This document shows, piece after piece, positions 22,608-50,559 of a DNA stretch of 64,000 nucleotides. The notes beneath the pieces are model-generated. The model ran no database searches and was not told the DNA's origin. It was given only the letters and a program-made list of their open reading frames with translations. Where the stretch lies: the sequence record PQ227241.1, one strand, 5' to 3'. The position numbers were made by a program, and so were the translations under genes. Each line of letters begins with the position of its first letter. Positions within the stretch are counted from its first letter, which is position 1.

Positions 22608-23141
22608 TTAACTTTCTAGATAACGGATTTGACCATTTTCTAGATAACGTGCTGCACCATTCTCTAATAGTCGGATAGTATCTGACGTATCATCAATACG
22701 TTGAATTAGTATATTACATTCACCATAGTAAGCATAACTACTCGACATAGCTACTATCGTGTATGGAACAATATCCGTAGTTGCATTGATTGGTGTTGTA
22801 TCGAATGAAATATCATCTGGTCCAAGCTTCCAACCTCGTGAACGGTTAATTTCTTCAGCAATCGCTTTAGGTGTTAAAGTACCAACTATCTTAAGGATAG
22901 ATCCTTCACCAATAGCTCGTGGATCAGCAAAATCTAACCGACGGTAAGTTAACATGTACTTAATGTCAGTAGTAATGTCGATCATTTCAATAAATGTACG
23001 TCCAGGCTCAATCGTGGTTGGACTAAAAAACATATCTTCAAATGTAACTGTTTCTGGTTTGAAGTTTATTTTTAAATCATCCCGCGCAAGTTTTACTAGC
23101 GCATTCCTCGATGCCATGTCATACGGAAAGATATCCTGCAT
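22608..23141 (-). CDS. gp143: Virion structural protein with C-terminal RxLE(N)G triple repeat
   Basis: 177 aa with an RTFIEM...YRRLDF family motif. Ends IRLLENGAARYLENGQIRYLES. Confidence 0.7.
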   Translation of the reverse strand: MQDIFPYDMASRNALVKLARDDLKINFKPETVTFEDMFFSPTTIEPGRTFIEMIDITTDIKYMLTYRRLDFADPRAIGEGSILKIVGTLTPKAIAEEINRSRGWKLGPDDISFDTTPINATTDIVPYTIVAMSSSYAYYGECNILIQRIDDTSDTIRLLENGAARYLENGQIRYLES

Positions 23142-47710: not shown

Positions 47711-48119
47711 TGAAATCTACCTTAATCACAACGGCCTCCAAATCTACAATGTTGGGGAGCCTCTTTTTAGTTTGATGTACGGACCTTCCCTTAAAGGATT
47801 CACTCTTTTCCTTATTACTTGACTTCTGCCATTTATGCGGGTCACTCGAACAATATAACTTTTCGGTGGCCCGCTTAAACTGTTTTTCTTGAGGGATCTC
47901 CTCAATGTTTTTCTTGGCATAATCTGTAATAAAGTCCTCTAGCCCTTTGGGCATAAAGGCATCCTGAACAGGATGGAATTCTTCAAAGAAAGTATTAATG
48001 TATTTATCATCATCTACGGTAGACATCTTATTATCTACCATGGTATTTTTTTCTATAAGAGATACCCTCAGGGCATCCTGCCATCTTTCGATGACTTCTG
48101 GAAATAATTGAACGTTCAT
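47667..48119 (-). CDS. Hypothetical protein, first gene after an early promoter
   Basis: 150 aa with an AATAGGTT leader motif. Confidence 0.65.
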   Translation of the reverse strand: MNVQLFPEVIERWQDALRVSLIEKNTMVDNKMSTVDDDKYINTFFEEFHPVQDAFMPKGLEDFITDYAKKNIEEIPQEKQFKRATEKLYCSSDPHKWQKSSNKEKSESFKGRSVHQTKKRLPNIVDLEAVVIKVDFNGNTKNCGAYSSIS

Positions 48120-48162
48120 TTGGATTAACCTATTTTTAAATTAGAAGATCATGATCATTACT

Positions 48163-48179
48163 GTAATATAGATCTTAAA
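48163..48179 (-). promoter_or_regulatory. phiKZ early promoter (TTTAA-N4-TATATTAC)
   Basis: Minus strand reads TTTAAGATCTATATTAC, matching the TATATTAC early motif and the copies at 60756 and 61944. Confidence 0.75.
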
Positions 48180-48205
48180 CTTTTTTTAATGTAATACAAC
48201 ATAAA

Positions 48206-48225
48206 GCCCTCCCCGAAGGGAGGGC
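48206..48225 (-). terminator. Major capsid gene terminator with UUCG loop
   Basis: GCCCTCCC-TTCG-GGGAGGGC-TTTATGTTG. It lies 9 nt after the second in-frame stop (48235), about 90 nt after the annotated UGA. Confidence 0.9.
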
Positions 48226-48234
48226 CTATGTCTG

Positions 48235-48315
48235 TTACTCTTCTAACTTCCGGGCATTACCGTCTTCCAAATAACGGATAGTCCCATTTTCTAGATAACG
48301 GTAACCCTTTCCAGC
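48235..48315 (-). other. In-frame 26-codon extension of the major capsid ORF beyond UGA (putative readthrough domain)
   Basis: After CCG-TGA the same frame reads AGKGYRYLENGTIRYLEDGNARKLEE-TAA, which matches the gp143 C-terminus. Confidence 0.75.
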
Positions 48316-50559
48316 TCACGGCTTAAGATCAGCAAGCTTACCGTTGAACTGAGTTTCGCCCATGACTTTCTGGAAGCCAGTGATCTTGAACTCTAGTGCG
48401 AACGGAATGTTGTTGACGTGTAGGTTGAACGGAATGGCCGCGATTTCGCGAGTAACCTGGTGACCACCACGGGTGATCGGTAGGTCAGCGATAACAGTAG
48501 ATACGTAGAAGAACTGACCCCAGGAGAGGATGTCGTTTTCTTGTTGTACTGCGCGGGTCGGAATTACAACTAGCTTACCATCGAATAGCTGGTTGTTGGT
48601 GGAAACGATATCGTACTTGAGATAAGCACCTAGAGTACGGTCGTCACCTTTAGTCATTAGATAGTTAGCAATCTCTTTGTCGGAGCAGAAGAGATACATC
48701 GGAGTTTCATCCTGGTTACCGGAGATAACACGGAAGGCAGCTTCAATGTTGGAATCACGGTGAGCCGGGAATAGCTCAGCTTTAACACAGTTTAGGATCG
48801 CAGCGCAAACGTCGTCCCAACGATCTTTAGACTTGATGGTGTCGATGACTTTCTCAAGATCTAGTTCTTTGTAACGATAGGTCGGACGCATTACAGCGGA
48901 TAGTGCACCTTCGATGATACCAAACTTCGGACGGTTGTAACCATTGTGTACAACTTCACGTAGTTGAGCAAGGTAGTTAAGCATGCGCTTAACAGCGTTG
49001 TTGCTGTTACGGATGTTGGTGTTAACGGTTAGAGCTTTAACAACCTCACCCGGACCTTCATCGGTCATGGTGTCCATCGGTAGAGTTACAGGAGCGTGCA
49101 TCGGGATCGGATGACGGAACTGTAGTGCACGGGTCTGTAGTAGGTGACCACGCTGACGACGGTTGGTGTTGGTGAAGCGAGTATCTAGTTCGAAACCGAT
49201 AACAGCTAGGTCAATTAGCTGATCTAGAATAGCTTTAACAGCCGGGTCAGCATTATCCATTACTTGACCATCTTCGTTTAGAACTTTATCGACGTAAGTG
49301 TCGGTAGCACCAAACTTAGAATCGCCTTTGGATAGGCTGATAGTACCGCCGAAACCAACGCTTAGACGTAGGCTTAGTTTAGCAGTCTTAAGGTCGTTAA
49401 TAACGCCATCAGCTGAACCGTCGATGAAAGTGGTATCGCCACTAACAACAAGGTCATCGCTATCGAAACGGATAACTGCGTTCCGGGTATCACCAACTAG
49501 ATCGGGCTGGAACACAGCGCGAGGTAGACGGTCAACCTTGAACTTAACAACTTTACCGCCGAGTAGAACGAATAGGTTCTTTAGACGACCAGCCGGATCA
49601 ATGGTGTCAGAAACTTCAAGCATGCCACGCTGAATGAGTAGGTTAGCATTGGAGTTACCCATTAGATCAAGACGTACGTTCGCTTTTAGCGGAGCAGTAG
49701 TGATAGTTAGGTTCTGCTCGTTCTTGATGGTGTACGGAGGAACAAGAGCCGGGTCTACGAAGAAGTCAGCATTGGAACCAGCCGGATCTAGGGCAGGAAT
49801 TAGTGCAATGCTTTCGTCGTCGAGGATGGAAGGATCACGATAGGCTTCTACCATGTTCACTTCTTCGTTATCCATCTTAACGCCGGATACTTCGTGGTAA
49901 ACGTCTTTCATTACAGCGATGTAAGGAAGAACCTGAACAACACCACCTTCAATCGGGTTGATAACGGTGGTCGGATAGATACGCTCAGCGAATTCATCCT
50001 GACGGCTAGCAGCTAGGTTATAACCAATAGTTACAACACGGAAATCACGCTGTGACTTCTCGTTATAGTTCTCTAGGCCAACACCATTTTCGAATACTTG
50101 AATGCCACCAGCAGGGCCATTGAACTGATGCTGTACAACCTTAACATGATCTTCATTAGAAGCTTTAGCTTTGGTAATACCACGTAGTGCACGGATATAT
50201 TTAGTTTCATCAGCACAGGCGATAGCAGCCATGGTAGCAGCAGTGATTTGGTTCTCACGGACACGTTCTTCACGAGCACGTACTTGAGGATCACTGGAAC
50301 TTACTCGTTCGAAACCATAGTCGTTAACGAGCATTTGCATTTTGTTATAAATTGCAGCGGCATCTTGAATGTCGGTAGCTTGCACGGTACCGAAGTTTTC
50401 ATGTGAAATGCTGCTAATAAGGGAACGACCTTGACTAACAACGCTGTCATTTAGACCAATTTCACTTTCTAGGCGGCCAATGAAATCTTCCATTGAGAAG
50501 ACTTCGTAATTCTTTTCGCCTTTGTGTTTAAACAGTTCTCTTAGGGCATGTACGCTCAT
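48316..50559 (-). CDS. gp120: Major capsid protein
   Basis: 747 aa, with propeptide cleavage site GLE163 and GC-richer, highly-expressed-type codon usage. Recognised as phiKZ gp120. Confidence 0.95.
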   Translation of the reverse strand: MSVHALRELFKHKGEKNYEVFSMEDFIGRLESEIGLNDSVVSQGRSLISSISHENFGTVQATDIQDAAAIYNKMQMLVNDYGFERVSSSDPQVRAREERVRENQITAATMAAIACADETKYIRALRGITKAKASNEDHVKVVQHQFNGPAGGIQVFENGVGLENYNEKSQRDFRVVTIGYNLAASRQDEFAERIYPTTVINPIEGGVVQVLPYIAVMKDVYHEVSGVKMDNEEVNMVEAYRDPSILDDESIALIPALDPAGSNADFFVDPALVPPYTIKNEQNLTITTAPLKANVRLDLMGNSNANLLIQRGMLEVSDTIDPAGRLKNLFVLLGGKVVKFKVDRLPRAVFQPDLVGDTRNAVIRFDSDDLVVSGDTTFIDGSADGVINDLKTAKLSLRLSVGFGGTISLSKGDSKFGATDTYVDKVLNEDGQVMDNADPAVKAILDQLIDLAVIGFELDTRFTNTNRRQRGHLLQTRALQFRHPIPMHAPVTLPMDTMTDEGPGEVVKALTVNTNIRNSNNAVKRMLNYLAQLREVVHNGYNRPKFGIIEGALSAVMRPTYRYKELDLEKVIDTIKSKDRWDDVCAAILNCVKAELFPAHRDSNIEAAFRVISGNQDETPMYLFCSDKEIANYLMTKGDDRTLGAYLKYDIVSTNNQLFDGKLVVIPTRAVQQENDILSWGQFFYVSTVIADLPITRGGHQVTREIAAIPFNLHVNNIPFALEFKITGFQKVMGETQFNGKLADLKP

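Follow-up and report, generated by a model that had tools for sequence, protein, structure and literature searches.

An RNA hairpin just downstream of the UGA stop of the phiKZ-like major capsid gene lies in a very probable readthrough extension and may stimulate readthrough

phiKZ is the model nucleus-forming jumbo phage, and a near-atomic structure of its capsid is available. The stretch of DNA analysed here, 64,000 nt of sequence record PQ227241.1 and referred to below as the window, is on sequence grounds DNA of a phiKZ-like Pseudomonas jumbo phage; the 601 nt spanning the hairpin described below show 99-100% identity to 47 phiKZ-type genomes. The minus-strand ORF at 48316-50559 shares 99-100% identity with phiKZ-like genomes in which it is annotated as the major head protein, and its product matches gp120 of PDB entry 8Y6V (747 residues). 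It terminates in TGA, which closes only 11 of the 64 long ORFs inside the 64-kb window. An in-frame extension, a hairpin within it and the terminator of the transcript lie downstream of this stop codon:

48316..50559, minus strand: major capsid (head) protein gene gp120, 747 codons, ending in TGA (from the ORF list)
48316..48318, minus strand: UGA stop, the proposed readthrough site; +4 base G; preceding codon CCG (Pro)
48308..48315, minus strand: 8-nt spacer GCUGGAAA from the stop codon to the hairpin (sequence read and fold)
48238..48315, minus strand: 26-codon in-frame extension AGKGYRYLENGTIRYLEDGNARKLEE with eight-residue RxLE(D/N)Gxx repeats (translation)
48252..48307, minus strand: 56-nt RNA hairpin (RNAfold)
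48305..48307, minus strand: GGG, the 5' strand of the closing helix, beginning with the third base of Lys AAG
48252..48254, minus strand: CCC, the 3' side of the closing helix (bases 2-3 of GCC and the first base of CGG)
48235..48237, minus strand: TAA closing the extension (sequence read)
48204..48227, minus strand: intrinsic terminator of the capsid transcript, 3' of the extension (terminator scan)

On the minus strand, the capsid TGA (48318-48316) is followed by the spacer GCTGGAAA (48315-48308) and then by the 56-nt element (48307-48252), confirming the 8-nt gap between UGA and stem-loop that a preliminary description of this DNA had reported. The hairpin predicted there is returned by RNAfold as both the minimum-energy and the centroid structure, with 22 pairs and -24.7 kcal/mol. 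Specifically, none of 200 dinucleotide shuffles of the hairpin is as stable, their energies being -11.1 +/- 2.5 kcal/mol (z -5.39). It is the same hairpin for which 23 pairs and a 4-nt loop had been claimed, yet RNAfold leaves the terminal G-U pair open and therefore gives 22 pairs and a 6-nt loop. The hairpin is retained, beside a separate terminator hairpin, when its 171-nt context is folded, and it is also retained when only the RNA outside a stop-paused ribosome is folded. Searching 48100-48450 against Rfam at permissive E-values gave chance-level matches only, all far under the gathering scores.

The distance from the hairpin to the strong intrinsic terminator is 25 nt. A terminator lies 3' of the second stop in every related sequence, with stem letters that differ but stay complementary; this recurrence rests on single-sequence folds, which were used because the RNAalifold alignment of the terminator, meant as a positive control, was too poor. 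The hairpin itself was considered as an intrinsic terminator and rejected, as the bases that follow it, GGAAGUUAG, contain no U-tract and the real terminator is the one at 48227-48204.

Capsid gene ends were gathered from GenBank phages, IMG/VR and metagenomes, the metagenomes giving few new sequences. TGA is the capsid stop in each of the 25 distinct related sequences carrying the extension, a set that includes phiKZ, phiPA3, PS119XW, Phabio, 201phi2-1, Viktualia, Psa21, D6, RVTF4 and Noxifer, and TAA is the stop in each of the 12 distinct related sequences without it. In every extension-bearing sequence the frame is open for 24-30 codons past the TGA, and the 25 peptides follow the pattern RxxE(D/N)G-xx-RxxE(D/S)G-xxx-RxLE. 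Indels in their alignment are whole codons without exception; Arg codons swap between CGN and AGR, and the Arg, Glu and Gly columns hold although the third base of these codons has changed 3-11 times on the tree. DNA similarity to PS119XW, Phabio, 201phi2-1 and Psa21 runs past the capsid stop and across the extension. Variation at the three codon positions is 0.41/0.38/0.52 in the extension versus 0.17/0.09/0.37 in the capsid gene.

On the capsid tree, extension and TGA appear ancestral, with at least four independent losses, each leaving TAA. In particular, one sequence nested within the extension-bearing clade (L035, metagenome contig RCUK01000188.1, about 995-1040) has lost 59 nt, most of the extension, in a recent deletion and has TGA replaced by TAA, and the 3' end of the extension left behind is out of frame.

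None of the annotated records of phiKZ-like genomes marks the extension, and we found no report of capsid readthrough or extension peptides in the literature on phiKZ-like phages. The readthrough extension thus appears to be unreported, and it is a stronger discovery than the role of the hairpin. Pfam and PDB sequence searches with the 26-30-residue extensions returned no match, and a PHROGs search gave a weak match only (E 0.083), pointing to gp143. AlphaFold models the extension alone at pLDDT 55.6 with no secondary structure, and a fold as a small beta-meander is not supported by that result. In Viktualia, GenBank annotates a 32-aa hypothetical protein over the capsid stop in another frame (L070, 977-1075), which the conserved sequence probably misled the gene caller into predicting.

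The gp143 gene and its C-terminal module are located elsewhere in the window:

22608..23141, minus strand: gp143-family virion protein gene, 177 aa (six-frame motif scan)
about 22611-22676, minus strand: C-terminal repeat module of gp143, IRLLENGAARYLENGQIRYLES (peptide-matched control)

We named this gene gp143 because it is located just upstream of an adjoining gene which, from its N-terminal sequence, we take to be the phiKZ gp144 transglycosylase. The protein falls in phrog_2935 ('virion structural protein', E 3e-46). In 17 diverse homologues, the family C-terminus reads R-LLEDG-xx-R-LLE-x-G-xx-R-x-LE with invariant Arg and Glu positions, and a profile of 23 capsid extensions matches the last 28 residues of the family with 96% probability in hhalign (E 4.5e-9). 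Module and extension have the same eight-residue RxLE(D/N)Gxx repeat, in about 2.6 to 3 copies at the protein end, and in phiKZ the two have an exact 17-nt string in common. The gp143 module differs in lying inside an ordinary ORF with no preceding stop, and its RNA is much less structured than that of the extension. In many gp143-family genes (L079-L084, L090, L094, L095), a TGA directly follows the module (...ELEH-x TGA).

In the AlphaFold model of gp143, pLDDT is 84.7 overall and only 62-68 in the repeat motif. The modelled N-terminal domain resembles a chain from the outer region of the phiKZ baseplate (9XQD, E 1e-6, TM 0.59-0.69); gp143 was not found in the PDB or in the text of a published structural atlas. 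From the likeness to the baseplate chain comes the speculation that the tail common to the capsid protein and gp143 might be a docking or assembly tag. Such a common tag points to a joint binding partner or assembly step.

Taken together, the tie between extension and TGA and the match to a real protein module make it very likely that the extension is translated through UGA readthrough, and the readthrough claim of the preliminary description is upheld to that degree. Its further claim that the hairpin element is dual-coding is supported as well. A minor share of the capsid proteins probably carries the extra C-terminal tail.

How much of the hairpin is a consequence of the peptide was assessed with two null models. 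In the usage null, the peptide is fixed and codons are drawn from each phage's own capsid usage; in the permutation null, synonymous codons are shuffled among equivalent positions. Random synonymous recodings of the extension peptide fold to about -19 to -29 kcal/mol. Against the usage null, the real extensions are slightly more stable, with a mean z of -0.53 over the whole stretch and -0.72 when only the RNA outside a stop-paused ribosome is folded, and z is below zero in 16/25. The RNA of the phiKZ gp143 motif (-14.8 kcal/mol) forms the same upper 11 pairs alone. The upper half of the hairpin is automatic: Arg CGU pairs with Asp/Asn-Gly, and the Leu-Glu codons, YUNGAA, are self-complementary. 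We read about three quarters of the hairpin stability as inherent in the codons of the repeat peptide.

Synonymous identity is lower overall in the extension than in the capsid gene (0.54 versus 0.70 in the last 190 capsid codons, whose lowest window is 0.64). A low value is the opposite of the usual outcome for an overlapping structure, and it fits a stretch that few ribosomes translate.

Selection beyond the peptide is seen in the lower stem. Three third-position bases there are nearly fixed: G before the Gly codon in 24/25 sequences (codon usage predicts 9.4), C ahead of the first Arg codon in 23/25 (11.3 expected) and the C of an NCC codon on the 3' side of the hairpin, again in 23/25 (8.5 expected). 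On the capsid tree these positions change 1, 2 and 1 times, against 6-11 times for a typical third position of the extension, and positions 1 and 2 of the same three codons (pre-Gly, pre-Arg and NCC) account for 6, 13 and 10 changes. Codon-pair context does not explain the frozen bases, because in these capsid genes G precedes GGN in only 14% of cases and C precedes CGN in 51%. The gp143 motif serves as a peptide-matched comparison: the base before the motif Arg is C in 23/25 extensions (first Arg, 92%) versus 24/48 in gp143. In the 11 genomes with both copies, the extension folds to -27.6 and the gp143 motif to -21.3 kcal/mol (Wilcoxon p 0.005), with synonymous-permutation z of -1.54 and -0.17, respectively. 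Over all extensions, permutation z averages -1.53 and is below zero in 24/25; for the phiKZ hairpin against synonymous recodings, p is 0.012 under the permutation null and 0.036 under the usage null.

The placement of the structure relative to the stop is also kept. The spacer consists of three codons whose sequence is free to vary and whose number is kept in 23/25 sequences, and in folds that allow for a ribosome at the stop codon, 24/25 have their first structured domain begin 5-9 nt past it. The spacing of the hairpin is therefore conserved. In our reading of these sequence patterns, the lower half of the hairpin (GGG/CCC plus C-CGU/ACG-G) and its stop-adjacent placement appear to be under nucleotide-level selection. 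The pairing is thus a signal independent of the peptide only in part: the lower stem is constrained beyond the peptide, but the repeat codons by themselves give most of the pairing.

Across relatives, the long hairpin of 22-23 pairs is not conserved as such. The RNAalifold consensus from a MAFFT alignment contains only 5 pairs, between the first Arg codon and the Asp-Gly of the second repeat, and one clade folds otherwise. Mapping of the phiKZ structure on the alignment shows that over half of the sequences cannot form many of its middle pairs; 70.9% of alignment cells are paired, versus 37-50% when the structure is slid along the alignment. Double changes occur at 10 pairs of the phiKZ hairpin, and the slid control gives 11. 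The GGG/CCC helix is best conserved (paired in 87.5% of alignment cells) and shows no covariation; because it never covaries, its conservation could serve something other than pairing.

In the folds with a ribosome at the stop, the first domain is a long hairpin of 56-64 nt with a 7-8-nt spacer and -18 to -26 kcal/mol in 16/25 sequences. Part of the Psa21-like clade has an alternative hairpin of 39-41 nt with a 5-6-nt spacer, in which CGG, otherwise rare, encodes the second Arg; G at the third position of this codon (CGG or AGG) is present in 18/25 sequences versus 1.5 expected. Psa21-like relatives (L005, L014-L022, L036, L071, L072) are predicted to have two mutually exclusive hairpins of similar energies; GGG/CCC closes the long one, CCGGG pairs with UCCGG in the short one, and unusual codons (ACC and the rare CGG) back both. 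These alternative folds may be a conformational switch or simply drift. Because this clade pairs two mutually exclusive hairpins with unusual codons, the readthrough rate might be switchable.

As for the immediate stop context, the base after the capsid TGA is A or G in 24 of the 25 extension-bearing sequences, C in one and U in none, and the codon before it encodes Pro, Ala, Gly or Val in 25/25. With a single reporter, basal UGA readthrough was measured at 0.04% for P. aeruginosa PAO1 and at 0.08% for P. putida, compared with 12% for E. coli MG1655 (PMC9481147). Given this very low Pseudomonas background, the conservation of the extension implies some stimulation of readthrough. The phiKZ virion presumably contains about 1,600 copies of the capsid protein, of which readthrough at 0.04% would extend fewer than one per capsid.

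The following mechanism would account for these features. The UGA would be read as sense, most likely by the host near-cognate tRNA-Trp, which is the expected decoder because a scan of the 64-kb window found no tRNA gene and hence no suppressor tRNA in it. While the UGA is in the A site, the hairpin would sit at the mRNA entrance of the ribosome, where it could favour tRNA-Trp over release factor 2 and lift readthrough to a set level. The cis features present are the UGA stop, the +4 purine found in 24/25 sequences and a hairpin at the usual site of frameshift and readthrough stimulators. The product would be a minor capsid species with a C-terminal repeat module, as at the normal C-terminus of gp143.

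In the capsid, the C-terminal arms of gp120 (residues 728-747) from six subunits form a helix bundle at the hexamer centre, and in pentamers they touch gp244 (PMC11297242). Because the arms meet there, the added tail would emerge at capsomer centres. The cryo-EM models of gp120 (8Y6V) end at residue 747, and no extended form is described with them.

That the hairpin stimulates readthrough is plausible from this analysis. For the explanation as a whole, a real hairpin in a UGA-readthrough extension that probably raises readthrough to a set level, we see roughly an even chance of being right. We know of no hairpin besides SECIS that stimulates readthrough on bacterial ribosomes. The fuller proposal, that this hairpin is the first non-SECIS cis RNA to stimulate bacterial readthrough and that it fixes a low count of subunits with a gp143-type tag, is tentative and may well prove wrong. 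If it is true, an unseen minor capsid species with a tag at hexamer centres would be common to nucleus-forming Pseudomonas jumbo phages from six genera or more.

An alternative that we take seriously, though we consider it rather unlikely, is that the hairpin is a passive by-product and that the rate is set by the UGA, the +4 purine, the Pro/Ala/Gly pre-stop codon or an infection factor. It would explain why recodings of the same peptide reach -19 to -29 kcal/mol and real extensions depart from them by a mean z of only -0.5 to -0.7, why the gp143 motif alone forms the upper 11 pairs, and why the consensus stops at 5 pairs with no overall excess of synonymous conservation; the stop context, with a +4 base that is never U and a pre-stop Pro, Ala, Gly or Val in 25/25, also speaks for it. 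However, a by-product would leave unexplained that lower-stem third positions are frozen against both codon usage and codon-pair context, that C precedes the first Arg in 92% of extensions versus 50% in the gp143 motif, and that spacer length is kept while spacer sequence varies. Additionally, the extension is about 6 kcal/mol stabler than the matched gp143 motif, its synonymous codons being arranged towards folding. Selection at the nucleotide level is silent on which RNA function is selected, and the hairpin could instead serve the mRNA, as a 3' stabiliser against exonucleases, an RNase III-type processing site or a terminator helper on the most abundant late transcript; its long, nearly unbroken 22-pair duplex and its location, only 25 nt short of the strong terminator that ends the capsid transcript, would suit such a role. 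We regard this as improbable, as relatives without the extension have the terminator alone, directly after TAA, so that the capsid mRNA needs no second hairpin. Moreover, the hairpin is never seen without TGA and an open frame, no U-tract follows it, and a conserved distance of 5-9 nt from the stop would be meaningless for 3'-end stability.

Two further explanations dispense with ordinary readthrough. It is very improbable that the extension is untranslated, being conserved as an RNA or DNA element behind a TGA that is an ordinary stop. The gp120 structures, modelled only to residue 747, and the weak three-position pattern of variation (0.41/0.38/0.52 versus 0.17/0.09/0.37 in the capsid gene) agree with it, but a non-coding element would not be expected to keep an open frame in 25/25 sequences with whole-codon indels only, to hold Arg, Glu and Gly columns through 3-11 third-position changes and moves of Arg between CGN and AGR, to match in profile the C-terminus of a real protein family (gp143), or to have TGA and TAA track its presence and loss. 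P. aeruginosa has selenocysteine machinery, and an apical loop about 33 nt past the UGA is within the range of bacterial SECIS elements; the hairpin could then be a SECIS, with the UGA decoded as selenocysteine via SelB. This we think next to negligible: the apical part is the least conserved, with a 3-nt insertion and AGR Arg codons in one clade, another clade folds differently, no Rfam family comes near threshold, the element far exceeds known SECIS elements in length, and its position in a C-terminal linker gives no hint of a redox role. Stimulation of UGA readthrough by the hairpin thus stays the reading that we prefer, at the strength given above.

Several known systems resemble the phiKZ case in part. 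The murine leukaemia virus gag-pol pseudoknot and the extended stem-loops of alphaviruses and plant viruses likewise combine a leaky UGA with a conserved in-frame extension, and the RNA-virus and retrovirus stimulators have a stable structure about 8 nt past the stop within coding sequence. In contrast to them, the phiKZ element belongs to a double-stranded DNA phage and would act on bacterial 70S ribosomes, where release factor 2 is the competitor; it is a simple hairpin, and nothing points to a pseudoknot. Its pairing is mostly a side effect of the peptide repeat, and neither its architecture across clades nor its synonymous sites overall are conserved. Bacterial SECIS elements are alike in that a hairpin shortly past an in-frame UGA leads to decoding, but the phiKZ hairpin has no conserved apical loop and no Rfam match, is longer and is conserved mainly in the lower stem.

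In its outcome the phiKZ case resembles A1 of Q-beta (Allolevivirus), in which a phage capsid UGA is followed by an in-frame extension, a minor capsid species results and decoding by tRNA-Trp is expected. Q-beta, a small RNA phage, infects E. coli, in which UGA is naturally leaky (12% in MG1655, PMC9481147), and its extension has about 200 residues, whereas phiKZ has a host background about 300 times lower, a 26-residue extension and a hairpin after the stop. The T7 10A/10B proteins and the Ig-like domains added by frameshifting are alike in that recoding at the end of a structural gene adds a C-terminal module to some subunits; in phiKZ it would be stop-codon readthrough instead of frameshifting.

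If made, the conserved readthrough product would be a new virion component, and it would explain the weakest stop codon on the most highly expressed late gene. To our knowledge, programmed stop-codon readthrough would be new to tailed double-stranded DNA phages. Should the hairpin drive it, the element would be a bacterial counterpart of the RNA-virus signals, in a host with 0.04% background, and structure-dependent control of bacterial termination would become directly testable. Additionally, the extension may be a natural site for low-copy display on the capsid of phiKZ.

Some capsid genes outside the extension-bearing set also end in TGA, among them those of two distant relatives. In Escherichia phage Goslar (L075, 979-1066), the TGA is followed by A and by 28 in-frame codons to the next stop, and in Ralstonia phage RP12 (L077) by A and 15 in-frame codons; neither stretch contains the repeat motif or folds significantly. 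One IMG/VR sequence (L026, 2128-2742, 3300043122_000192; also L059) has a capsid TGA though it lies within a TAA-ending clade, and continues in frame into a 203-codon ORF with a Big_2 Ig-like domain (E 4e-9). This ORF could be a second readthrough decoration; we downgraded it as independent proof of readthrough because an ATG two codons past the TGA allows separate initiation.

Downstream of the extension, the terminator has the conserved form CAUA-stem-GGCUUUAUG (48204-48227, minus strand), with a stem that differs in every phage. Beyond it, a conserved TATATTAC box with an upstream A-run is located at 48163-48170 on the minus strand; it resembles what we take to be the phiKZ early promoter, here presumably for the next gene, gp121.
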